Notes: generated from the sequence alone by a model not told the origin. 31,836 bases of DNA from Oopsacas minuta (GCA_024704765.1 JAKMXF010000079.1:1-31836); one strand, 5' to 3'. Positions 1 to 14,549 are shown, numbered from the stretch's first letter. Made by a program: numbers and translations.

Positions 1-145
1 GCTAATAGGGCAACGAAATTAACATTATAATCCCGTTTGGGACCCGAAAGCTGGTTGCTAATAGAGCAATATTACTAATAAGCTAACTACATTGTATATG
101 AAAACGAAAACTTCCAAATTTATCTGGGAGGCAAGAAAAACTTTT

Positions 146-190
146 GGGGGGGCAACCGCCCCCCCTTGCCCCCCCGTAGCTACGTGCCTG
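146..190. mobile_element. Probable terminal region of a non-autonomous DNA transposon (MITE-like end)
   Basis: G/C homopolymer-rich tract GGGGGGGCAACCGCCCCCCCTTGCCCCCCCGTAGCTACGTGCCTG ending in ...CTG, typical of TIR element ends; the partner end is not seen in the window. Confidence 0.4.
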
Positions 191-199
191 CTTTATATC

Positions 200-261
200 A
201 GGTTCCATCAATACTAAAGTTCTTGAAAATATTTTACAGAACTTTAGTATTGATGGAACCT
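200..261. repeat. Near-perfect palindrome with 24-bp arms
   Basis: AGGTTCCATCAATACTAAAGTTCT (200-223) is the exact reverse complement of 238-261; the 14-nt loop itself contains the palindrome AAAATATTTT. Confidence 0.95.
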
Positions 262-380
262 AATCAGCCCTACCTTCCGACTGACCAGGACAAGTAAAGG
301 AGGACAGAAGTTACTAGCAGGAGGCTACATATAAAGTAATTGTTCTGAATATACATATATATTAAATACTTTTGTTTTCG

Positions 381-423
381 AAAGGAAACTTAGTAAAAAC
401 TAAGTTTTTACTAAGTTACCTTT
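381..423. repeat. Palindrome with 15-bp arms and 1-nt centre
   Basis: AACTTAGTAAAAACT (387-401) / AGTTTTTACTAAGTT (403-417), extended by AAAGG/CCTTT after one mismatch. Confidence 0.9.
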
Positions 424-817
424 GTGAATACAAACTTAGTTTTTGATGTGTAATGTTTCAAAAAACAAGTCTTTACTTAATTTTAGTAATAGCAATAGTT
501 AAATTTAAGTAGTTAGTTGATAGGGCCTGTCAGGCTTTTACTAGTCCTGGGGTAACAACTGATCCGGAACTGCTATGGCCGACTACAACTTGTCCTCCTT
601 TGCCATAACTTGCTCGACCGCTGTAATAGCCCTAGAATATACCCAATCACAAAATTTATATTATTGAATCTTAATTGTTATTTGTTTGTTTGTTTGTTGG
701 TCAAAGAAAGGATTTAATGTATGAAATTTTGAAATTGTAGCATAACTATGTATTAATCGTGTTTATCAAGGAAGTAAATAGAATTCAATAAAACTTCACT
801 AAATATATTGAACATGC

Positions 818-1070
818 TGAATCCGATTTTCACACTTTTGGATTAATCATATGTAGATTTATTGTTGTTTTTATGCATATAAGGTAAACAAATTATCCAA
901 ATCTCAAAATATTCGTACAATCTTGCTCTAAACGGCTACTCAGGGGATGATCTTACAAATTAATTCAAAAAATATATATGCCATATACGTATATTGGAGA
1001 ATAATGGATATCACGAAGCAACGAGCCTTTGGCTCGTACCTCCTATATCACAATCACAAAATACCTCCTA
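818..1070 (-). mobile_element. Diverged non-autonomous repeat (Helitron/Helentron-like), copy A
   Basis: 818-939 is an inverted homologue (roughly 75% by eye) of 4167-4291; short hairpin ACGAGCC-TTT-GGCTCGT at 1021-1037. Family assignment is inference. Confidence 0.45.
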
Positions 1071-1899
1071 TATTTCCAGGGTTTTTGGATTGTGAGTGTG
1101 CAATGTCTTGTATCCTTGTTGTAAGTAAAATTGCCATTATTTTGATGTTAGTGTTATGAAGATATAAAAGATAGTAGCAAATGTAGAGCATGTCCGAATG
1201 AACATGTTTGGAACAATGTAATATCGTAAATCTTAGAATACAAAACAATTTCAATTAATATTCAAGTCATATCATCTCTAATGGAGTAATAAATACGGTA
1301 GGACTCGAATAAGACATACTATTTCTTAGAAAAATTCAATAGTGAACAACAATATTTCTAGTACAAATTATTTGATTCCTAATTAATAGCTAATAATCTG
1401 GTGGAACTCTAATGAACTTACGATCTTTGACACAAACCTAACTACTCAAATCCGATGCAAAATTTCCAGATTTTTGCAAAATCTCTAAATGTTTGTTCTT
1501 ATTTTCTTTTATTTTCCTTTTATTGTCAAGATGTAATCACATTCACATCTTTGAACTGCCAAATCTACTTAGGTATTTATCCTCATGGTCACTGAGTTGA
1601 TATATTGATAAGTAGAATACTATGTCTATTATATATGGGGTACAATTTTAGGAAATCTTTATGCATATACTATCTTGCAACCAAATATCTAGCTTGATTT
1701 AACCATATTTTGAACCTATGATTCCTGAAAAATCTCTGTGACAACCTTACAGATTTCTCATGTCCTTGTTGTTTGAAGATTCATTGCACTCCTACTTGTC
1801 CTAGAAGATCTATCTCCCATCTAACATCTGAACGAAGTAAAGCTTTCCCACTCAAAATCATTAAGAAGAAATTATCTAATAATATTAAATGTTATAAAA

Positions 1900-3657
1900 G
1901 GATCGAGAAATTTCGCAAAAGCTGCTAAGAGAACTAGTCTACACAGCAAATTATATTTTTATCAAAGTTTCTTTAACAAATTTACATCCGATACATATTA
2001 CAATGACAATATACAAACATCAGCGACTAATATTTGAACAAATTTTATACACATAACAATAGACAGGGACAGATTGGACAGATTGTTACCGCGACACACA
2101 ACATTTGCTATATTATGCAACAGATGTATGGATTGGATTATCTAATCAACTATTGAGAACATATTATGTTCATGAAACAATTCATGAGTTCTTAAACCAA
2201 GAAACTAAGATTGATTAATAATTATTTCTCAAACGCACATTCACCTCAAACAAATCAATTCAACATATTCAATAAATTTGAAAGAAAACGTACAAAATAT
2301 TCAAAATATAGAAAAATAATAAAGGCATAGTACAATATTCATGATTTCATCTATTAGCTCAGAAACCAGAACTAGATGTACAAATCCCGAGTAAATGAAC
2401 CCAGAATGTAATATTTATTCTCATATACACTCAACTATCAACTCTAATCCATTCAACACCCCAAACGAAAAATGAACTATACGTATGTTTAATGAAATCC
2501 CAAATTTTACTTACAATTACAATATGTATACAATATTGGATTATTCCAAAGCAGATCCATAATTCTTCAACTTTGCACACAGAAATCCTATACACAGATA
2601 CATCAATCCAATAATAATGACACCATTATTTACCCACAACCATCCCCCACATTCCTGATTTTTGGTAACAATGATGAATCACTTTCATCTTTTCCTCTGA
2701 CATTATTCCAGAGGTCTCAAAGAAGATTCCACCGAGACTTACTCATTGAAGATGCTTTGCATACAAGTGCATACAACTGGTGAGTCCTAATAATTATTTC
2801 GAAGATAATATTGAAGTGTATGACAGAAAATATAGATGTTAATGACTAAGAAAATCCTTTAATCAAGACATAATGAACAGAATAACTGACCAAAAGAATT
2901 CTATATAAAAGAGGATAGACTCTTTTCCTCAAATTTCTTCGTTCTCTACATACAACTGAGTCGATAGTCCAACGTCTGCTGGGCCATATAAATAATATTA
3001 TTGTTCTTATTATTGTTTACAAACTAGTTTAAACTCTACTGGCAATTAACTAAACAAACTAGTGACAAATTTAATACAAATATGTGTTTACAATTTGTAG
3101 AACATTAAAACAATAAAACAAAAACAACAAAACCAGACGAAGACAGAATGTTACCACGACAAAAATATTTGTAGTATGGACGTATGATCTCAATTACTCT
3201 AGCAATATATCACAGATGAATTATTGATGATTTCGGATTCTATAACTGGAATATGTGCATAGCTAGCTTAACTGAAGTAAACCTGAATACCTCTGATTGA
3301 AACCTGAACCCCTACCAGATGACCATACAGCTTCTGTTAAAAGAATTATACTAATGTATATTCTGTAAAACAAAACGGTCATAATGACGAATGTAACAAA
3401 CAGAATATAAACTTTACAGCCATCATATAGAACTAACGTACTACTGGACAATACCCTAATATGTATATCATCTTTGTTAACATCAGTCAAACCTAATAAT
3501 AGACTTACAAATAGACATCTACAATTCAAACTAAAACAACTGATAACACAATTTACGCAAACAGTGACTTGTATGCTACAAAAGAAGTTGAGAAACCACC
3601 AAGCAAGAGTCACACAGTTAAACCATTCATCTAGTAATAATCATATGGGAAAGTAAA
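1900..3657 (+). pseudogene. Highly decayed Penelope-like RT relic
   Basis: A-rich, G-poor plus strand; frame-broken motifs in PLE order: ILDYSK..FNFA (about 2530-2580), DNIEVYDRK..RITDQK (2800-2900), QFVEH (about 3090), CSMDV.S..YSSNI (3170-3210), IDLQI...TIY (3500-3560). Many stops. Confidence 0.4.
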
Positions 3658-3659
3658 TC

Positions 3660-3890
3660 CTATCTTTTGGTATCCTGTGTTCTGGTATCCTGAGGTTCAT
3701 ACAGGGATTCGTTTTGAGTATATCTTATTTTGTTATGTTGCGACTCAATTGCTGTCCTCTATCTGATGTGCTGATTATGTTGGGTTTTCTTGAATATAAG
3801 ATATATCTTATTTCTGTGTTTCCAAGTTGTACTTGACTCTATGATTTGAGTTGTTAATTTGTGTCAAAGTTCGAAATTCTTCATTAAAGT
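3660..3890 (-). pseudogene. Small decayed PLE pre-RT fragment
   Basis: Minus-strand pieces NIISTSDRG (ADKG-like) and KIRYTQNESLYE; the strand skew flips at about 3657. Confidence 0.3.
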
Positions 3891-5144: not shown

Positions 5145-5594
5145 TTGTGTGAAGTTACACCAAGCCTCTCTCCGCCTCAGCGCGCTGAATTTGACGATCT
5201 GGCAGCACAAGTATCGGAGTTGTCGCTCTCACATGGTGAGGTAACTGCTGGGATAAAGCGTGATGCAGAGGAAATAAAGTTAGACATGGCAGTAATGAGA
5301 TCTGCAATTGAAGCCCTCGGAAAGAACGAGCGTGATAAGGAGAAACTACAGGCAACTATTGCAAGACTTGAGTCAGCGGTTACCCAGCTTCGTGACGAGA
5401 ATGAACAACTGCTAGAGCAGCAAAGCAGAGATGTTACTGCACAGGTTGCACCGTCTACTGAGTCTCTACCATCATACGCATCTGCAATCAGGTCATGTAC
5501 CCTGAAAGTGAGTGTCAGCCGTGGTGATCCTGATGAATCTTATCACATCATCCGAGAGGCCTCGTGGAGGAACCAGAGATCTAAAGAAATGTGA
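5145..5594 (+). pseudogene. Inverted paralogue of the coiled-coil ORF, without a proper start codon
   Basis: Frame is open from 4983 to the stop at 5594 with no upstream ATG (track start is TTG); 4 aa differences from the minus copy in the core. Confidence 0.6.
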
Positions 5595-5630
5595 AGAAAT
5601 GTAGGTTAAAACTTAGAAAAAACAACTCAC
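5581..5630 (-). other. Putative 50-nt spliceosomal intron in the inverted-repeat spacer
   Basis: Minus strand TG|GTGAGT...TTAAC (branch-like, 5609-5605)...TTTCTTCACATTTCTTTAG|ATC; the acceptor coincides with the inner end of the left arm. Confidence 0.7.
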
Positions 5631-6307
5631 CAAAACCGGTCAGGCGGTTTGCACTGACTGGTTGATCTCAAGTTCCTCGCACGAGACCATCTCGGACAAG
5701 CTGGTAAAGACTCATCAAGACCGTCACGGTTGACACCCATTTTCGGAGTAGATGATCTGATCGGAGATACGAATGATGGTAGAGACTGAGTAGACGATGC
5801 AACCTGTGCAGTAACATCTCTGCTTTGCTGCTCTAGCAGTTGTTCATTCTCATCACGAAGCTGGGTAACCGCTGACTCAAGTCTTGCAATAGTTGCCTGT
5901 AGTTCCTCCTTATCACGCTCGTTCTTTCCGAGGGCTTCAATTGCAGATCTCATTACTGCCATGTCTAACTTTATTTCCTCTACATCACGCTTTATCCCAA
6001 CAGTTACCTCACCATGTGAGAGCGACAACTCCGATACTTGTGCTGCCAGATCGTCAAATTCAGCGTGCTGAGGCGGAGAGAGGCTTGGTGTAACTTCACA
6101 CAATACACGCGAGGATAATTCTTGGGTGGGCGGTAGAGACTCATAGAGATTAGCAGCCACCGGAGGGTAAGTAGGGAGAGAGTGAGAGAAAGAGAGAGAG
6201 ACAGAGGGTTGTTGTTGTTGTGATTGCGGGTCCGGCGGGTCCGGCGGTTCTGGAGTCGGGAATTGGGCGGGTGGAACCCTCCCCAAACATGGGAAGTATA
6301 TTCTCAT
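5627..6307 (-). CDS. 226-aa protein with Pro-rich N-terminus and central coiled coil, function unknown (gag/ORF1-like)
   Basis: ATG 4 nt after a strong splice acceptor; PEPPDPPDP motif, heptad-rich helix (LAAQVSEL...LLEQQ), C-terminal KPPDRF. No family recognised. Confidence 0.65.
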   Translation of the reverse strand: MRIYFPCLGRVPPAQFPTPEPPDPPDPQSQQQQPSVSLSFSHSLPTYPPVAANLYESLPPTQELSSRVLCEVTPSLSPPQHAEFDDLAAQVSELSLSHGEVTVGIKRDVEEIKLDMAVMRSAIEALGKNERDKEELQATIARLESAVTQLRDENEQLLEQQSRDVTAQVASSTQSLPSFVSPIRSSTPKMGVNRDGLDESLPACPRWSRARNLRSTSQCKPPDRFW

Positions 6308-6649: not shown

Positions 6650-6958
6650 TTAGTTTTCTCCTCCAATCTGTTTCCTTGTTATCTCTGCAGTTGTAGGGTG
6701 TCGTATAGGAGCTGGGGGGTAAAGAGCTAGTACTTGCCATTTGATAGAGGGGCTGAGTTGGTTTTTAACGATGTTGTGCTTTTCTGCGTACTTGAGTGTA
6801 GAATTCTCAGTGTTAGCTATCCCTATGAGGACGTGTGGGTTGTTAGGCTCACCATTTGCGTTTTTCCCATAGTGCAGGAGGTACAGCATGCGTAGTCTTG
6901 TGCACGGTATAATGGGGTTGAGAGGTGTACGCTTGCGAGGGTCTCGTAATTGTTGCAC
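6650..6958 (-). CDS. GIY-YIG-like endonuclease domain of the PLE (frameshifted continuation of RT)
   Basis: PCT..MLYLL...VLIG...KYAEKH...WQVL...AEI...GEN-stop follows the PLE EN layout, preceded by C..TC.MC in the RT frame; one extra base at the G4 run 6914-6917 would join the frames. Confidence 0.6.
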   Translation of the reverse strand: MQQLRDPRKRTPLNPIIPCTRLRMLYLLHYGKNANGEPNNPHVLIGIANTENSTLKYAEKHNIVKNQLSPSIKWQVLALYPPAPIRHPTTAEITRKQIGGEN

Positions 6959-8241
6959 ATTCTGCAGGTGTAGGATGGACAGTGTATATAGTTATGGTTG
7001 TGGGTGGACTTTGGCATTTGGTAGCAGAGTTGTCCTTTCAGTAGCGCGAGGGGGATATTGGGGATAAGGTGGTAATCCGTGATCTCCAGGTGGTGTAGTT
7101 GGGATTTGGTTGGTCTGGTTTGGCTGTATGTATATTTGAGGATTGGCTTGAACTCAAAAGGCTCTTTATCTGTTCTAGTGGGGAAGTAGCATATGTTAAC
7201 AAGCTTGGTTGTAACGTCTCTGAGGTTGTGTCCCAGTCTTTTGAGGGATGGGAGATATCTGCGGAGGAGGTGGTCAAGTGCATCCGCTGGGTTCGTTGCT
7301 ATCTTGGATGCTCTAAAGGCGCTTGATTGGTACGTATTTTTGCACATTTTCCGTCTAGGGTGGTAAGATTGGGGATGTAGAAGTACCGGTTGTCTGTATT
7401 GTTGTGTAATTGGTTTAAAGGTCTTTGTTTGGGTGTCATAGATGCAGTCCTGAGTGGCATTGGGTGCTGTTTCTTTTAAGGTGTACGGTCCTAGTGGCAG
7501 GTCCATAACTGGGAAGGTAGCTGCCAGGTCGTCAAAGTAAATTGTGAGGACCAAATTGCCCGGAGGTGGACGGTAGTTGTTTAAGAGGTAGGCAGTGCAT
7601 AATCTAGCTAGTTCAGGAGCTATTGGTAGCCCCATGGGTATCCCTACGTTTCCTAGGTGGAAGAATTCATCACCGTTTGTTGTGAAGTTGAAGTTGAGGA
7701 GTTCTTTTAGGATTAGCATTTCCCTATCATGTCCTGGGATGAAGTGATAAAAAGCTGTTAAGACAAGGTCATGCGGGGTATTGGGATAGAAGGCCTCGAT
7801 GTCTGCGGTATATATGTGTTCCGGTGTTCCTGGTTTGCTTAGTTCGCTAATGGTCTCAAATATGTCCTGTGTAAGGTACGGGTGTAGCTGGATAATGGGT
7901 GTTATAATGTTGCGAATGGTTTTGCTAGCGCAGGAAGTAATGGTATTCTTGTGGTTGATGATGGGCCGGCTGATGTCAACTAGGTTTTTGGCTTCGTTGG
8001 TGTAGGTATAGATTTCCGGGTACTCTGTACTATGGGTTATGGAGGTTGGTTTATGAGTCTTGATTTTGAAGTACATTGTTGGTACTCGATCATCTGTGTT
8101 ATAGAGTTGTGTGTGTGGGTTTACTTGGTACAGTGCATGCTTCAGTTTGGAGATGGCGTTCATATACGTAATGGGGTGGACGTTCGTGGCTGTCTTGGCC
8201 AGGTAGAGTTGATACACCCTCATAACCGTGAAGGTCTTCAT
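6823..8241 (-). CDS. Penelope-like reverse transcriptase
   Basis: ADKG just upstream in frame, PTMYFKIKTHK, RPIIN, TADIEAFYPN, GIPMGLPIAPELA, YFDD, HPQSYHP: the PLE RT motif series. The frame opens at about 8295. Confidence 0.93.
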   Translation of the reverse strand: MKTFTVMRVYQLYLAKTATNVHPITYMNAISKLKHALYQVNPHTQLYNTDDRVPTMYFKIKTHKPTSITHSTEYPEIYTYTNEAKNLVDISRPIINHKNTITSCASKTIRNIITPIIQLHPYLTQDIFETISELSKPGTPEHIYTADIEAFYPNTPHDLVLTAFYHFIPGHDREMLILKELLNFNFTTNGDEFFHLGNVGIPMGLPIAPELARLCTAYLLNNYRPPPGNLVLTIYFDDLAATFPVMDLPLGPYTLKETAPNATQDCIYDTQTKTFKPITQQYRQPVLLHPQSYHPRRKMCKNTYQSSAFRASKIATNPADALDHLLRRYLPSLKRLGHNLRDVTTKLVNICYFPTRTDKEPFEFKPILKYTYSQTRPTKSQLHHLEITDYHLIPNIPLALLKGQLCYQMPKSTHNHNYIHCPSYTCRMCNNYETLASVHLSTPLYRAQDYACCTSCTMGKTQMVSLTTHTSS

Positions 8242-8641
8242 TATTAGTAGTCCCGGGCCTTTGTCTGCTGATAGAATTTGGAGGTTCTCCTTTTTTTAAG
8301 TTGGCTTTAAGGTTTTTAAGCAGTTGGTTGTAGCGGCTATAGGTCCTCTGCTCATATTTGGGGATTTGGTAATGAGTTAGAGGGGGGCTGTTATTGTCGA
8401 GCTCCAGGATTCCTTTGAACGATGTTAGGAAGGGGTTAGGGTGGTCATCTTGTGGGGTTTGAAAGGTGAGGCCATATTCTAGGAGTTGTTGGAGAATTGA
8501 TGCTGTATTAATGTTGCCTGTTTGGTGGATGAATATTGGCGGAGGTTTATATTCCCAGGTTGAGGGGATTGGTAGAGGAGGTGTTATACTGATGGCTGCA
8601 TGTTGGGTTCTGCCAGTTTGGTGTATAAGGTGATGGTGCAT
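8099..8641 (-). CDS. N-terminal part of the PLE RT protein (frameshifted)
   Basis: LLEYGLTFQTP matches the PLE N-terminal LL.KGL.F.P motif; removing one base from the T7 run at 8291-8297 fuses it to ..NLQILSADKG. The frame is open upstream to 8797. Confidence 0.75.
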   Translation of the reverse strand: MHHHLIHQTGRTQHAAISITPPLPIPSTWEYKPPPIFIHQTGNINTASILQQLLEYGLTFQTPQDDHPNPFLTSFKGILELDNNSPPLTHYQIPKYEQRTYSRYNQLLKNLKANLKKGEPPNSISRQRPGTTNNEDLHGYEGVSTLPGQDSHERPPHYVYERHLQTEACTVPSKPTHTTL

Positions 8642-8711
8642 GCTTTTGTCTAGTGGTGTCGTGTGTTCTATGCATAGGCGGCAATTATGGGAGAGGTATG
8701 TGTCAAGTAGG

Positions 8712-8746
8712 AGGGAAGGCGGAAGGGCACTTAGTCCGCCTTCCCT
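8712..8746. other. GC-rich stem-loop with a perfect 12-bp stem
   Basis: AGGGAAGGCGGA (8712-8723) / TCCGCCTTCCCT (8735-8746), 11-nt loop. Confidence 0.85.
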
Positions 8747-8780
8747 AAATGAAAAGGACCCTCTGAAGTTTGTGCCTGAT

Positions 8781-9662
8781 TCACCTTGATGGTAAATTCA
8801 TCACTGCGCCAGATGGGCTAGGTAGTATGTTGTGGGTGGGTGCAACTGCCATTATTGCATTGGGCTGTTCGTTCCTTTGGGCATGTCCTATTGGATGTTG
8901 AGCAGCCGAAGTGTTTGCGCTCATTTTTGGCCGTTCTATCTCTGCCCACATTTGGCGCACAGGGAGATTGCTTTGCAAGCGGTTACCAGCTGTGGATATA
9001 TCTTGGCTTGTTCTGATTGCGGGGGCCTTGTTGGGTGCAACTTTGTAGAAATTAGATCTTTTTTCAGGGTGGTTTGCCAGTGGCCATCCTTTGATTTCCT
9101 GGTGGTTTGGATATCCCTGGGTGATTGTATTGAAGGTTTCCACAAAGTGTTTTCTGAGGGCGAGTGGTAGAGTCTTGGTGTATTCTTCAAGGGATTTAAA
9201 TCGTGGTGCTATCGTGAGCTTATCTGTATATTTTTTGTCTGTGGTTGTGAAAATTGTGGCTGTTGTGAGGCATTTCGCACAGGGGTATTGAGTTGGTACC
9301 ATTGGTTTCAGGTTTGGAATTTTCTTTGGTTTCGCAGCGATGGGTAGTCTATCTGAGGCTGCTGCTGCATAACTTTGGAGTTTGGGTCCCGTTTTCCGAT
9401 CTAAGGGTTGGAAGAGTTCACTGTTCCTGATTTCAGTTTGTAAAAGTGTAGTTAAGAAGCTTCTGGCCATAGTGTTGGCGTCCATGTGGAGGGCTTGCAT
9501 GATTGTTCGATATGTATGGGAAGGGAACTCTGGTAGATTTAGGAGTGGTAGGTAGTTTTTTGGAGTGTGTTTGTGTTGTCCAGTAGTACATTTAGGCCAT
9601 AGGCCGTTAGTTGTTCGTTGTATGTTTTTTTTGTTCTGCATTGTTTTTGGCTTTTGCAACAT
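8781..9662 (-). CDS. PLE-associated ORF1b, 293 aa, unknown function
   Basis: Long open frame co-oriented with RT and sharing its skew; SYAAAA and a single CAKC motif; no family recognised. Confidence 0.6.
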   Translation of the reverse strand: MLQKPKTMQNKKNIQRTTNGLWPKCTTGQHKHTPKNYLPLLNLPEFPSHTYRTIMQALHMDANTMARSFLTTLLQTEIRNSELFQPLDRKTGPKLQSYAAAASDRLPIAAKPKKIPNLKPMVPTQYPCAKCLTTATIFTTTDKKYTDKLTIAPRFKSLEEYTKTLPLALRKHFVETFNTITQGYPNHQEIKGWPLANHPEKRSNFYKVAPNKAPAIRTSQDISTAGNRLQSNLPVRQMWAEIERPKMSANTSAAQHPIGHAQRNEQPNAIMAVAPTHNILPSPSGAVMNLPSR

Positions 9663-9689
9663 ATTGGCTTTCGTATGGTATGTCTAGTT

Positions 9690-10406
9690 CTAGTTGTTCA
9701 AAGGTGGCTGCCGCAAGCAGCCGGATATAGAATGATTTAATAGAATGTGGTGCATTAGTGAATCAATCGCTTGGGAGATAGATAGTTTTTGGGGGAACGT
9801 CAGTTTGTTTGGCTGTGTATCTTCCAGGTAGAAGTACTCCTCGGAATTCAGGATGTTATAGAGTGCGCAGTTATGTGGGAGGTTAGCTAGGTAGCTTCCT
9901 TCGCCACTTGTGATGTTATATGGAGGAGTTGAGCTAGGCGTTGGTTCGTCATTTGTTGTTATAGTTTTGGGGTTTGTACGGGCAGTGGGCTGTTTGGGTG
10001 TAATTTCCACATTAGGTGATGATTTGTAGGTTGTGGAAGATAGGTTTGCTGTGTGTTGTGAAGGTGGTTGCACTTTAGTTGATGATGTTGTAGGTTTGTA
10101 TGGTTTGTCAGGGCTTTCGTGCTCAGCAATGCTGAGGTTTGATAGGTTTGGAAGGTCATCAAAGAATTTGGATAGCCTGGGCGGTCTGTTGATAGGGGAG
10201 CCTGAAGTACGGTTTACAGAAGCGCTGGGAGTTGGCGTAGCCAGCAGCGGTCTTCTGGAAGGTTTAGCTGGTGGGACATTGGTGAGCCTTGGAGATTCAG
10301 AGGTTGTAACTCCAGTGCTTGCAGCTCCACCAGCGGTCGGTTGTGAGGGCTTCGCCTTACTAACCGCCGGCCGTTGGGAAGTGCGGGCAGGACGATGAGT
10401 AGTCAT
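9690..10406 (-). CDS. PLE-associated ORF1a, 238 aa, S/T/P-rich N-terminus
   Basis: ATG about 105 nt downstream of TATAAATA; same frame as ORF1b, separated by TAG-AAC-TAG. Confidence 0.6.
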   Translation of the reverse strand: MTTHRPARTSQRPAVSKAKPSQPTAGGAASTGVTTSESPRLTNVPPAKPSRRPLLATPTPSASVNRTSGSPINRPPRLSKFFDDLPNLSNLSIAEHESPDKPYKPTTSSTKVQPPSQHTANLSSTTYKSSPNVEITPKQPTARTNPKTITTNDEPTPSSTPPYNITSGEGSYLANLPHNCALYNILNSEEYFYLEDTQPNKLTFPQKLSISQAIDSLMHHILLNHSISGCLRQPPLNN

Positions 10407-10511
10407 TGCTTTTGCACTATTAAAAGTCGATTATTTTTGCAAGGTAAATAAGTTAATTGTAATAGTTCAGGGTGCAAATTTACAGAAGTGGAAAAATATA
10501 AAACTTTCGTG

Positions 10512-10519
10512 TATTTATA
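10512..10519 (-). promoter_or_regulatory. Candidate TATA box for ORF1a
   Basis: TATAAATA on the minus strand upstream of the ATG at 10406. Confidence 0.4.
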
Positions 10520-10529
10520 CACTTTTCAA

Positions 10530-11340
10530 CTGTACTGTTGTATTAGTTTTCAGCTTTGGAATGTGCCTGTCATTATGTCCATAGATTGCCTATTGATGTG
10601 TGTCTGTATTGTGTCAGTATTGTGTTATGTGTGTCTGCATTATGTGTGTTCTGGTGAGTAGTGGTGTGCTGCAATGTATTGCTATTGCAACGTATTGCTG
10701 TGTTGCAAAGTATTACTGTTTTGCAATGTAGTGCTGTTGCAGGATACATTGCAAAATGTTGTAGTGGAAATGTTATAGGTGAGATGTTATAGTAGGATAG
10801 TTGTAGGATATTGTTTATGTACTGTGTTATATTGCTGTTGTTGTAAGATTTATGTTGCAAATGTTGTTGTAGAAGTTATGCAAATGTTGTTGCTGTGTTG
10901 AAATGTATTGCTTATGTGTTGTAGTTTGCAAATGTTGTTGTGGAAAGTATTCTGTATTGCTATATATCTTTGCATTGTAAATGATGTTGTAGAAATAGTC
11001 CTGTGTTATAATGAATTGTTGTTGTATTGCTGTTATTTTGAGATTAATGTTGCAAGTGTTGTTGGAGTATTGTTGTAGAGTACTTTATTGTTTGTTGCTG
11101 GAGTGTAGGGCTGATGCTTGAATGTTGTGTAGTTGTTATGTGATTTGTTTGTGTTGTAGATGCTATATTTGTTTTGAAAAGAATGTTATATTATTTGTAC
11201 TCCTTGTAGGGGCTTTGGGAAAGTATATTGAGAGCTCTGAGGTGGTGTTTGCAAGCTGGTGTTCTCAAGCTCATTCGTTCAGAAGGGTAGATGTAGAGGA
11301 TATTTGTGTGAATATGTAGAAAGGTATATTAGTAGTATGA
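10530..11340. repeat. G/T-rich low-complexity tract with degenerate TGCAAATGTTGTTG repeats
   Basis: Motif recurs near 10750, 10857, 10880 and 10927 with further variants; C is only 3/60 in line 10861. Confidence 0.7.
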
Positions 11341-11420
11341 TCTTATGTTAATGGATAATAAAGTTTGCAAATTGGGGACCTGTTAGTTTTGCTGTATTAA
11401 TTTAAGCTAACTGTCTAAAA

Positions 11421-13745
11421 CGGGCTTGTCCAACCTTTTTTGTTCGCGGGCCAAATGAGGGCTTCTTTATCTACTTGAGGGCCGCACGACATTGGATATA
11501 TCAAGGTAGCATGATGTTATTTATTTGGGGATGGCGTTAATACGGATTATTTCAGAATTGAAAAATCACTACATGTATTATTTAATTATAGTAAACTTTA
11601 ATGATAAAGAACATATCTAATGGGATATCTGACTTTGTTTTTGTTTACACAAAGAGTCAATATCTGCTCGTACACTTGATGTCGCAATCCGTAATATTCC
11701 TGATAGATGAGTGTCTGTCAGGAGTGATCTAGACTTGCTTTTAACATTTTTCATCATTGAGAAAAGCTGTTCACAGCAATACGTGCTGCCAAATAAGGAA
11801 AGGAACCTAAGGGCGTGTTGCGATAAATTAGGAAATAGATCCGATGTAACATATTGACCATAAAATGTCAGAAGGTCATGCTCTGCAAAAGCTCTCTTTC
11901 TCTCCGAGTTATTTTGTATTTCAATTAGTTCCAGTTGGAACATTTCAGGAGCATTAGTGGCATCAGTTCCAAACGGATCTGCAAACAACTCCATTTCATC
12001 GAATTTGTCACTAAAATCAGAAATCTTAGTTTAAATTCATCGATTATGCTGTTGATCAGTGCAGAATACTTGTCATGATTCACTGTCTCACTTTTTCTTG
12101 AAGATAATGTTGAGAAATGTACCACCTTTTTCAAAATAAATTGTTGGTGGAATAATTGTAATTTGTTGATGAACGCTTTGACATGCTCATACAGGTTGTT
12201 AACGAATTGTTTTCTTCCTTGTAGTTTCAGATTTAAATCTGCGAGATACTTAGTTATGTCAACTAGAAATGCGAGATCATTCAACCACTGATCATCATCC
12301 AGAAAGCTCACATCCTTTCCCTTAATGGTCATGAATGTTTTTATTTCTTCAAGTAGTGACCAGTATCTGGCTAGAGTGGACGCTCTGCTGAGCCAGCGAA
12401 CTTGGCTAAAGTAAATAACATCGTTATAGTCTGATTCTATCTCTGCAAGAAACGCTTGGAATTGTCTGTGATTGAGTCCCTTCGACCTTATGAAATTGAC
12501 TGTATTGACGACATTTTCCATCACATGTTTCAGATCTAAGGTTTTTGCACAAAGTTGTTCTTGATGAATAATGCAGTGGTATGCCATAACAGGAGAGGTC
12601 ATTGATTTGAGCATAAGGCTAACAAAGCCTTTATGCTTTCCTGTCATCGTAGGGGCTCCATCGGTTGTTAAACCACTTAGTTTTTCATCTGCAAGTTTGA
12701 ATTTCGTAAACACATGTTTTACTACATTGAAAATATCTTGCCCAGTAGTTGTGCCTTTCATTGGACATAAGTCAAGCAGTTCTTCGATTATTTCGAAATT
12801 TTCTGTGACACCAAGTACAAAGATTGCCAGTTGAGCTGTGTCGCTAACATCGGTACTTTCATCAAGGGCCAAGCTGTAAAATTTGCAAGCATTGAGTCGT
12901 TTAATTAGTGAAATTTCAATGTTGGATGATAAATCATCTTCTCTTCTAGCAACAGTTTGATGTGACAGACTGATGCTCTCTACTATCGACTTCTTATTTG
13001 GGCATGCCACAGATGTAAATATGTCTAAGCAGTCTTTTACAAATTCCCCTTCAGACAATGGTTTTCCACTCTTGGCTATCGCTTCTGTTATCAGAAAGCT
13101 GATCTTTGTTGCTGTCTCAGAACTTAATTTAACGGCTTTGAAGAAAGATTGTTGACTGTTGATGCTATCCTTCAACAGGTTCACCCGATCGATTCTCACC
13201 TGACCTGTAAGCGTGTCAAATGTATCTGCATGTTTAGTAGAGTAATGTCGTTTGATATTATACTCTTTGAATACAGCTATCTTCTCCTGACATATCAAGC
13301 ACAATAAGTATTCGTTGTGTTCTACGACGAAAAAATCTAATGTCCATGAGGATTTGAAAACTCGACATTCACTATCAATTTTCCTTTTCTTTGCTTTAAT
13401 CACGGGAGTTGACATATTTGTTTTGTAGTTATTTTAATATTGTTTAAGATGGTTTATTATTTGGAATTTATATGAGCTGTTCGAGTTGAGAGAAACCCAG
13501 TTATGTGACAGATGATTACTCAATCAAAACTAAATTACAAAGTTATTTAAGGATTTTTAAGTTATTGAAATCACACTTTTCTGAAATTGGTTTCATTCAA
13601 TTTGGTTTTGCAATATTGGGTTTCTCTTAATTGAGTTCGCTCAAATAGGTTTCACTCAATTAAATATCGCCACCAACTGGTAACAGTTCCCGAGCATGTT
13701 GGCGGGCCGGATTGTGGCCCGCGGGTCGTAGGTTGGACAAGCCTG
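11421..13745 (-). mobile_element. hAT transposon, Buster/SPIN (GTF2IRD2-like) type, 2325 bp
   Basis: 16-bp TIRs CGGGCTTGTCCAACCT / AGGTTGGACAAGCCTG (1 mismatch) around a transposase; both flanks fit nnnTAnnn but differ (GTCTAAAA vs CTGTATCC). Confidence 0.93.
11617..13415 (-). CDS. hAT transposase of about 600 aa split by one frameshift
   Basis: CLIC...RHYSTKH zinc finger, LALDESTD, TTDGAP, HCIIHQEQLC, VRWLSR, CEQLFS; one extra base at the AAA run 12021-12023 restores RFSDFSDKFDEMELFADPF. Confidence 0.92.
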
Positions 13746-13864
13746 CTGTATCCACTGCTACTGGTATCCACTGAAACCTGTATCCACTGCTACCGATATC
13801 CACTGCTACCTGTATCCACTGCTACTGGTATCCACTGCTACCTGTATCCACTGCTACCTGTATC
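13746..13864. repeat. 16-bp minisatellite, about 7.5 units (CCTGTATCCACTGCTA)
   Basis: Seven full units plus a partial one, with alternating CCTG/CTGG/CCGA variants. Confidence 0.95.
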
Positions 13865-14010
13865 TAAATGTCAGGTGCACAACTAGAGGTGACTACGAGT
13901 ACACATGCCAAATTTGGTGACTTATCTTATAAAGGTGTCAACATTAGAGCGCAAACATATACATATATACTATATACACAACTATTTTAGAACCGCCGTT
14001 GTATTCTCCT
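13865..14010 (+). mobile_element. Possible DINE-1/HINE-like (Helentron-derived) element end
   Basis: Minisatellite followed by CATGCCAAATTTGGTGAC...GCGCAAACATATACATA, resembling the core-plus-microsatellite layout of such elements. Inference only. Confidence 0.35.
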
Positions 14011-14183
14011 GCATTATATACATAAGAGATCTGGCGCTTATTTAAGGAAACACTCTGTGTAACTTTAAAGATATTTATCCAAATTGATTAATTAATGTAT
14101 AACTAATACAATGGTGAGTGATAAGTCTACAAACATACCTGAGGGTTTACATTTGGTTAGGAGGATGGTCATCAAACAAATTA

Positions 14184-14549
14184 CTAAATACAACCCGGAC
14201 GCCATGAAGAGATGTACCTTTCTCTTACTTCTTCCATCTCTATTCCAATATTTTCAATCTGGCGTTCTTTTTCAGCTAATTGGTTCTCAAGCATTTCAAT
14301 TTTTTGTTGGTGTAATACATTCTGAGAGTTAGTGAAGCGTAGTTTCCTCTCTAGGTTGGACATTTTTCGATTCACATTCTATATTCTTCTTCTCAAACTC
14401 AAGAGTTTTCTGTGTTAGATCAAAATTTTTCGATTCCAATATTTCGATCCTGGCTTCGATTTGCTCAAATGTGGTCCCGAATTTTTTTCCCACCAATTCG
14501 GCAATTGTGTCTGATAAATCCTTGATGGAAGATTGCGGAGGCTTGAATC
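14184..14549 (-). pseudogene. Frameshifted coiled-coil coding segment (about 120 aa)
   Basis: FEQIEARIEILESKNFDLTQKTLEFEKKN shifts into MSNLERKLRF...QKIEMLENQLAEKERQIE; acceptor-like TTTTGTACTTTAG immediately upstream. Confidence 0.4.

Follow-up and report, generated by a model that had tools for sequence, protein, structure and literature searches.

A probable Penelope-like retrotransposon family of glass sponges with two open reading frames, a predicted −1 frameshift signal and a hammerhead-like motif

A 31,836-nucleotide (nt) stretch of the Oopsacas minuta genome (GCA_024704765.1 JAKMXF010000079.1:1-31836; hereafter the window) contains, on the minus strand at about 11420–6650, what is very probably an old and defunct copy of a Penelope-like element (PLE) from a retrotransposon family of hexactinellid (glass) sponges. 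We place equally high confidence in the joint reading, in which a PLE family carries a first open reading frame (ORF1), a −1 frameshift signal, a second open reading frame (ORF2) and a 3′ module bearing a hammerhead. An intact unit would run from a short 5′ leader through ORF1, the frameshift signal and ORF2 into a 3′ non-coding module of 0.5–1.5 kb with tandem repeats and a type-I hammerhead motif; unit length across the family is 3.95–5.2 kb. Our analysis established the anatomy of the family, its homology, and covariation in both the frameshift stem-loop and the hammerhead helices.

The window copy was compared with the Oopsacas minuta reference assembly (G000; 61.46 Mb, 365 contigs), its broken frames being searched piecewise; relatives are cited below by contig (C), locus (L) or protein (P) number where they have to be told apart. 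Alignment of the genome copies put the outer, 5′-side end of the element at about 11420, beyond the 11345 proposed in a first-pass annotation made from the sequence alone. The sense strand of the element consists of 36% A, 30% C, 13% G and 20% T, and the rest of the window is unlike it. Its closest genomic relatives share 66–73% DNA identity over the coding part and are decayed too. As read from its sequence, the window copy is dead, because the reading paths of ORF1 and ORF2 (the latter near 8300 and 6915) are hit by frameshifts and stops, and it is an ordinary insertion.

The affinity to PLEs is most evident in ORF2. Its N-terminal PLE motifs, reverse transcriptase (RT) and thumb occupy 6823–8503 on the minus strand, with GL(T/S)F, ADKG at 8268–8257 and YFDD at 7539–7528. 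The RT ORF at 6823–8241 (minus strand), which the first-pass annotation had already recognized together with its YFDD, matched Pfam RVT_1 with an E-value of 3.9e-8, whereas a PDB sequence search with the same ORF gave no match. According to tblastn, ORF2 starts at about 8755, upstream of this open frame, and mutational frameshifts interrupt it near 8300 and 6915; the family profile (alignment A2) matched 8503–8288 and 8325–6883. A word-based protein search with the RT ORF yielded 26 relatives, including intact ORF2 products from ENA and Logan assemblies. These family proteins, 629–760 amino acids (aa) long, combine a zinc-finger-like N-terminus, DKG motifs, a YFDD RT, a thumb, a CX4CX2C linker and a GIY-YIG-like domain. 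The GL(T/S)F and ADKGPG motifs correspond to the GxKF/Y-like and DKG motifs of the PLE N-terminus, and the spacing between RT motifs A and B is about 53 aa, versus about 66 aa in canonical outgroups, with no insertion in the fingers domain (IFD). One relative (P0024; EukProt EP00800, TRINITY_DN2925) is a transcript of the glass sponge Vazella pourtalesii, and the family is therefore transcribed in that species.

A hidden Markov model (HMM) built from ten members and searched against 1.84e9 representative proteins returned 507 matches, of which about the first 130 were fragments of the same family. The first outgroups (E-values 5e-17 to 2e-11) were proteins of 640–730 aa with RVT_1, a C-terminal Pfam GIY-YIG domain and the PLE motifs ADKGG, SRPIVSN, a CNKPRCxTC linker, NVIY..C..C..YVGET and KPxLN. 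Profile–profile alignment of the family with canonical PLE proteins (A2 versus A6, hhalign) gave a probability of 99% and an E-value of 7.5e-18 over 542 collinear columns, extending from the region before DKG through the RT, thumb and CX4CX2C linker into the GIY and YIG strands. In the ESM Atlas, P0008 adjoins clusters with HTH_animal, DUF8422 and GIY-YIG (scores 0.96–0.97). The RT motifs, the outgroup matches and the collinearity with RT-GIY-YIG proteins all bear out the initial call of a PLE. In a maximum-likelihood tree from a quick IQ-TREE search, in which P0005, P0007, P0019 and P0033 were partial, a branch of about 3.7 substitutions per site (100% SH-aLRT) separated the family from the outgroups, and divergence within the family was deep. 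By its motif combination and this long branch, the family is set apart, at sequence level, from the nearest canonical RT-GIY-YIG proteins.

Upstream of the RT lies a remnant of ORF1 (8731–10406, minus strand), ancestrally one ORF of about 450–480 aa and now interrupted by at least five frame changes and several stops. Two frames remain open on the minus strand, at 9690–10406 (238 aa) and 8781–9662 (293 aa), together about 530 aa, and these had been taken for two extra ORFs, ORF1a and ORF1b. The coding sequence is indeed present, but tblastn with intact relatives traced a homologous path across both frames, switching frame near 9750, 9640, 9555, 9030–9100 and 8945 and crossing in-frame stops, so that the two are pieces of one broken ORF1. 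Intact homologues are found in L022 (4487–5878, 463 aa), P0029 (480 aa), L025 and two copies on contigs C24 and C41 of the reference assembly (open frames of 451 and 450 codons). The encoded protein has a disordered, S/T/P-rich N-terminus, a helical middle and C-terminal Cys/His motifs, and its invariant Cys/His residues include CX2C...HX2C close to the C-terminus.

The two ORFs travel together. ORF1 of 463 aa is followed by an ORF2 of 733 aa in L022, ORF1 of at least 423 aa by an ORF2 of 629 aa on the 3.5-kb contig L025, and ORF1 of 480 aa by an ORF2 of 635 aa in L026; the same linkage holds in L002 and in C24/C41, that is, in every well-preserved relative examined. Because this layout repeats in the loci of relatives, ORF1 is an integral gene of the family, as the first-pass annotation had supposed. 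Chance juxtaposition of ORF1 with the RT, which copies lacking the upstream frames would have signalled, was rejected, since the linkage recurs in 6 independent loci and well-preserved members all keep ORF1. The upstream frames had been called unrecognized, and they stayed so: Pfam and NCBIfam gave no match for the ORF1 pieces or for intact ORF1, and family, ESM Atlas and fold searches found no sequence similarity to any described ORF. Position and motifs suggest that ORF1 may encode a Gag-like, RNA-binding protein. Weighing against this, its AlphaFold model was poor (pLDDT 51.8), and Foldseek searches of the PDB and the ESM Atlas returned no usable match.

Of the 8 junctions that were translated, 7 have ORF2 shifted by −1 against the ORF1 frame (ORF1 of L023 is decayed, and L004 has an in-frame fusion), and the same relation holds in L026 and C24/C41. 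ORF1 ends a few codons past a U-rich site, which in the window is U CCU UUU in the ORF1 frame (8752–8758, minus strand) and in most members reads N CCU UUY. The site is C CCU UUU in L026 and L002 and C CCU UUC in L022. In L026, a stop closes the −1 frame directly 5′ of the heptamer C CCU UUU, so that the shift is confined to an overlap of 10 nt. Five to six nt 3′ of the shift site the window has a 12-bp stem-loop (8712–8746, minus strand), a presumed frameshift stimulator with a predicted energy of −22.5 kcal/mol (z −4.5; 0 of 200 shuffles). Stem-loops of 11–13 bp at the same 5–6-nt spacing are present in 12 of 12 junctions in alignment A7, and C24/C41 have a stem-loop of their own at a different spacing. 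In A7 (12 sequences), 90.3% of cells are paired, 7 of the 12 pairs have changes on both sides, and the covariation score was matched by 0 of 500 shuffles; when the registers were slid, the paired cells fell to 58–71%. The ORF2 frame continues past the shift site as an N-terminal extension without its own start codon (8630–8755, minus strand in the window), in which the peptide between the shift site and the first Met, REGGLxAxPPSL..CxxC-x12-HH, is conserved without an ATG in 12 loci; its zinc-finger-like CxxC-x12-HH motif falls at 8683–8630.

Taken together, the −1 frame relation, the heptamer, the covarying stem-loop and the conserved startless extension make a −1 programmed ribosomal frameshift of the gag–pol kind the best reading of the junction, and a likely one. 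The canonical shift site, C CCU UUU or C CCU UUC, is found in some members only; in the rest the first position is U, G or C, or the P-site codon is CAU or AAU, which counts against this reading. An improbable alternative is that the two ORFs are joined by splicing, or that ORF2 is translated by reinitiation or internal entry, with the hairpin put to another use or reflecting the encoded peptide. It draws on a donor-like site (AAG/GTGAAT) at the end of ORF1b (8781–9662), on a RefSeq-style model of the C317 copy that bridges the pieces by predicted introns (P0021, "hypothetical protein LOD99_6402 [Oopsacas minuta]"), on the retention of introns by PLEs (PMC8557442), and on the overlap of the stem-loop with coding sequence, where conservation is partly at the protein level. 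Yet the −1 relation is kept at every junction that can be read in both frames, and in L026 the shift site sits inside the 10-nt overlap, with the −1 frame opening just 5′ of C CCU UUU. The stem itself covaries on both sides in 7 of 12 pairs at a constant 5–6-nt spacing across the twelve A7 junctions, and most members conserve the ORF2 N-terminal peptide with no start codon. These observations favour frameshifting over the other routes.

At the other end of ORF2, the window retains a CX4CX2C linker (6981–6955) and a divergent GIY-YIG-like domain without CCHH (6650–6981 in all, minus strand), with a frameshift near 6915 and possibly another near 6715. The linker is nearly invariant (C547, C552 and C555 of P0002) and aligns to the CNxPRCxTC of canonical PLEs; it has the CX2-5CxxC form found upstream of the endonuclease (EN) in Neptune, Nematis and Naiad. 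The domain that follows contains C..YLL, (Y/F)(I/L/V)G.T in many members and (N/H)R...HL in about half; these are followed by W(Q/E)(I/V)L, whose W is invariant, and by a second conserved W with an acidic neighbour. The divergent members P0092, P0093 and P0065 read YVGQxG...HRIKxH...ExKW, resembling the classical GIY-YIG pattern. CxxC between the GIY and YIG strands occurs in 0 members, whereas the outgroup proteins have CCHH. An AlphaFold model based on 24 sequences (pLDDT 77.9, pTM 0.69) showed a beta-beta-alpha-beta-alpha order. Comparison of the model with 48,161 chains by VIA-align gave weak scores, but GIY-YIG folds were enriched among these weak matches, and the short list of 39 rows included the GIY-YIG chains of the I-TevI catalytic domain (1ln0; Z 4.1, root-mean-square deviation 2.7 over 67 residues), R.Eco29kI (3mx4), the UvrC N-terminal domain (1ycz) and T4 endonuclease II (2wsh). 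Two further entries, 2lwf (Z 4.2) and 9u75, are presumably GIY-YIG folds as well, although their titles do not say so.

The evidence tentatively suggests a divergent, CCHH-less domain derived from GIY-YIG, a putative nuclease of doubtful activity. The first-pass call of a GIY-YIG-like domain holds as far as positional homology, the motifs YLL, YIGxT, R..H and E.W and a resemblance in fold, but the resemblance is weak: Pfam GIY-YIG matched 0 of 24 C-terminal domains, domain-only hhalign to the canonical PLE EN gave a probability of 7%, Foldseek with the model found no match in the PDB, the VIA Z-score never exceeded 4.2, and the Arg and Glu that would be expected vary among members. The lack of a Pfam match, the variable Arg and Glu and the missing CCHH would also suit a functionally EN-deficient PLE lineage in which the C-terminal domain has lost its nuclease function and which spreads mainly by priming on free or microsatellite DNA ends and by tandem amplification. 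That scenario would accommodate the tandem arrays and the C24 and C41 copies described below, which are bounded by (AAT)n, the C41 copy beginning and ending at one internal (AAT)n point. We nevertheless consider loss of the nuclease unlikely, given that the domain has kept its length and core strands across the deep divergence of the family, that Y-I-G-x-T and R..H are retained in many members, and that copies are scattered over many contigs of the reference assembly.

Ahead of ORF1, the window has a non-coding tract (10432–11420, minus strand) that is A/C-rich and G-poor (G 8% on the element strand) and contains short internal tandem repeats, in agreement with the roughly 0.9-kb 5′ tract noted at first pass. 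ORF-less copies of the tract with 80–87% identity are found on contigs C50, C363, C332 and C302 and end at about 10432–10436, 26–30 nt ahead of the ORF1 ATG. On C338 and C358, the terminal part of the tract is located downstream of ORF2 sequence, which identifies the 5′ tract of the window as the 3′ untranslated-region module of the unit, placed upstream as a pseudo-long terminal repeat (pLTR). Speaking against this, the tract is not repeated directly beyond ORF2 in the window copy, which has only the upstream module; to that extent the earlier statement that a direct pLTR is lacking was correct. It does not extend to the family, in which partial or full head-to-tail tandems characteristic of pLTRs are found in C24, L022 and L026. 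C24 has a 467-bp upstream partial copy made up of the last ~175 nt of ORF2 and the 3′ untranslated region, L022 has 1111-bp repeats of 100% identity with a variable 341-bp array, and L026 consists of 5174-bp units repeated perfectly head to tail.

Direct repeats of 1.1 kb at 100% identity, an ORF1/ORF2 pair with a −1 frameshift reminiscent of gag–pol, and Cys/His motifs in ORF1 raise the question of another kind of terminal-repeat retroelement (LTR-like, DIRS-like or endogenous pararetrovirus-like), in which the repeats of L022 would be true LTRs. We regard this as highly improbable. Pfam found only RVT_1 in ORF2, with no protease, RNase H or integrase, and ORF2 is collinear with RT-GIY-YIG proteins. 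The repeats also differ from LTRs: that of C24 takes in the 3′ end of ORF2, in L026 units simply follow one another head to tail, the left repeat of L022 runs on into further 341-bp units with no defined LTR border, and a hammerhead motif lies inside the repeat. An LTR retroelement or endogenous virus was accordingly rejected as a candidate on the grounds that RVT_1 is the sole Pfam domain and that the repeats are of tandem type, leaving a PLE with pLTRs as the preferred identification.

Two of the copies are intact and belong to a sister subfamily. They lie on the minus strand at C24:~80340–84470 and C41:~86790–90900 (L038 and L039), are 99.4% identical to each other, and have ORF2 frames of 760 and 732 codons in the −1 frame relative to ORF1. 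Both are situated in an (AAT)n microsatellite, and the C41 copy has both its ends at a single internal (AAT)n-AGTAGTATAC point of ORF2, which gives it the look of a unit inserted in circularly permuted form. Their (AAT)n boundaries would fit microsatellite-primed insertion by analogy with other PLEs (PMC8557442).

The arrays have some features of their own. In L022, positions 1–3750 hold 11 perfect 341-bp units upstream of the intact element, the unit being also part of its 3′ module, and at positions 9385–14202, downstream, an unrelated 283-bp unit is perfectly repeated at least 17 times. L026/L027 belong to a contig of 19,796 bp (ENA ERZ25072740, ctg120440_226x_c), of which the 15.4 kb examined consists only of perfect 5174-bp units of an intact member at 226x. 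The suffix "_c" was read as circular; the contig may represent an episome, an array in a chromosome or a loop made by the assembly.

Within the 3′ module, the window copy bears a predicted variant hammerhead at motif level (10481–10534, minus strand). It is of type I with a U3-A8 core variant, and its predicted cleavage site follows U10486, 80 nt upstream of the ORF1 ATG. Helix I pairs UACAG with CUGUA, followed by the core UUGAAAA, helix II (GUGUAU/AUACAC), GAA and helix III (AGU/ACU). UUGAAAA is also the core of the subfamily to which the window copy belongs. The same architecture recurs in L003, L005, L008, L015, L021, L022, L023 and L038, and related motifs are found at the corresponding sense-strand position in L021, L022, L023, L026, L029, L024 and L016. 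The 3′ module of C24/C41 (L038) has the canonical core CUGAUGAG-CUGG...CCAG-CGAAAC and a GUC cleavage triplet; with this core and the related motifs elsewhere, a hammerhead is present in the terminal repeat at motif level. In an alignment of nine loci (A9), 88.5% of cells are paired and five pairs have changes on both sides; covariation was 0.274 versus 0.095 in shuffles (0 of 500), and slid registers all scored far lower. U3-A8 is a covariant of the C3-G8 pair known from PLE hammerheads (Cervera and de la Pena 2014, PMC4209133), and location of the hammerhead in the pLTR is a known PLE trait (PMC4209133).

Three results weigh against the hammerhead. Rfam E-value scans of 12 loci detected none, and the sub-threshold microRNA matches were judged to be chance; L038, scanned over 211 nt, scored 18 bits with Rfam HH9 (E-value 0.042), below the cut-off of 52; and the minimum-free-energy fold of the window motif differs from the hammerhead fold. 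The covariance-model search, suggested with the first-pass annotation as a check, thus gave no hit above threshold and a sub-threshold HH9 match in L038 only. The annotation itself had reported no hammerhead motif, a statement overturned by the U3-A8 variant at 10534–10481 and its covariation on nine loci.

These elements allow us to propose a life cycle for the family. Copies would lie in partial or full head-to-tail tandems, in which the 3′ module of the upstream copy would serve as pLTR and promoter region, and transcription would start in that module or pass through the tandems. Predicted hammerhead self-cleavage in the upstream and downstream modules would trim read-through transcripts to unit length, leaving a leader of about 80 nt before ORF1. 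Most ribosomes would then yield ORF1 alone, and a minority, shifting by −1, would produce an ORF1–ORF2 fusion. The RT/EN protein would nick the target (microsatellites for C24/C41) and copy the RNA by target-primed reverse transcription, which would give rise to 5′-truncated and tandem copies. What this scheme assumes about frameshifting, about the ribozyme and nuclease activities and about the function of ORF1 is predicted from sequence.

Among the PLEs with an EN (EN+), the Neptune/Nematis type with its zinc-finger linker was reportedly described by Arkhipova in 2006 and is treated by Craig et al. (2021, PMC8557442). The sponge family resembles this type in its N-terminal GxxF and DKG motifs, RT core, thumb motif (HPS...K) and CX4CX2C linker followed by a putative C-terminal GIY/YIG-type domain, and canonical C-terminal EN+ PLEs with such a linker were the best outgroup matches in the profile search. 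With canonical EN+ PLEs it further shares a hammerhead motif in the terminal repeat module, pLTR insertions and an association with microsatellites. It departs from the canonical single RT-EN ORF of Penelope/Poseidon, Neptune and Nematis in having two ORFs with a −1 frameshift signal, an extra zinc-finger-like N-terminus on ORF2, an EN-like domain that lacks CCHH and is not matched by Pfam GIY-YIG, the RT catalytic motif YFDD, a 3-bp helix III with a 12–14-nt loop in place of a minimal palindromic hammerhead, and a branch of 3.7 substitutions per site to the outgroup matches.

Placement relative to the named PLE clades was judged from diagnostic motifs as described in PMC8557442. The combination in the sponge family is DKG, a full CX4CX2C linker, no CCHH, no IFD and two ORFs. 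Like the Hydra clade (Craig et al. 2021), it is very divergent, has a C-terminal EN-type domain without CCHH and lives in aquatic non-bilaterian or invertebrate hosts; the Hydra clade, however, is characterized by DKT, CxCX5C, an RWK motif, single ORFs and an element length below 3 kb (PMC8557442), in contrast to DKG, CX4CX2C and two ORFs in 3.95–5.2 kb here. Naiad has DKA instead of DKG (PMC8557442), and Naiad and Chlamys are marked by an N-terminal EN, CxC and an IFD between RT3(A) and RT4(B), whereas the sponge EN-like domain is C-terminal and the ORF2 N-terminus is CxxC-x12-HH rather than an EN. Chlamys is similar in having an EN without CCHH, and different in its N-terminal EN, IFD and CxC motif. 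The multi-ORF layout recalls the EN-deficient Athena/Terminon PLEs, but Athena has no EN and attaches to telomeres. Multi-ORF PLEs have been described for EN-deficient Athena/Terminons and one Chlamys type; Chlamys-2_cBra carries an upstream gag-like zinc-knuckle ORF, and ORF1 is separable by a frameshift with a pseudoknot (PMC8557442, Fig. 1 legend). The hammerhead motif, like the PLE hammerheads of PMC4209133, is of type I, on the sense strand and in terminal repeats, and keeps the G10.1-C11.1 pair; its U3-A8 core covariant is shared with the Schistosoma Cercyon element. Helix III has 3–4 bp and a long loop, unlike the minimal, palindromic 1–2-bp helices reported there.

Of the retrotransposon classes, PLEs stand closest to telomerase, and the survey of their diversity is still under way. 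The class is already known, and what differs is the trait combination: a C-terminal EN-type domain together with a conserved ORF1 and a −1 frameshift signal. Further distinguishing features are the zinc-finger-like ORF2 N-terminus, the barely recognizable CCHH-less domain and named hosts that so far are only glass sponges. Known PLE architectures are broadened by a lineage that joins an EN-type C-terminal domain without CCHH to a putatively Gag-like ORF1 and a predicted −1 frameshift signal of the gag–pol style, which bears on the gain and loss of the endonuclease and accessory ORFs in PLE history. A literature search found no paper tying PLEs to hexactinellids. The Oopsacas genome paper gives 18% unclassified repeats and does not list PLEs (PMC10280926); part of these "unclassified repeats" is now classified. 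The intact copies C24/C41 from Oopsacas and L026 allow tests of frameshifting, ribozyme cleavage and nuclease activity.

A bolder proposal, which we hold to be rather doubtful, is that the family is a deep, undescribed PLE superfamily confined to glass sponges that joins traits of EN-deficient multi-ORF PLEs (ORF1 with a frameshift) and of EN+ PLEs (a zinc-finger linker with a GIY-YIG-derived domain) and that perhaps amplifies through intermediates, circular or of unit length, processed by the hammerhead. Episomal or rolling-circle copies are hinted at by the 19.8-kb "circular" contig of perfect 5174-bp units at 226x. If the proposal were true, the family would connect autonomous PLEs with retrozyme-like rolling-circle mobilization as a living intermediate.

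Finally, the PLE copy has distinct neighbours in the window. Directly upstream of its tract, two overlapping ORFs at 11617–13415 on the minus strand make up a hAT-like transposase gene (Spin-doc zinc finger, DUF4371). On the other side, at 5145–6307, two ORFs, one of 149 aa on the plus strand and one of 226 aa on the minus strand, code for almost identical coiled-coil peptides and form an inverted-repeat module. This module adjoins the PLE copy at its 3′ end, a possible reason why the 3′ tract is absent there.

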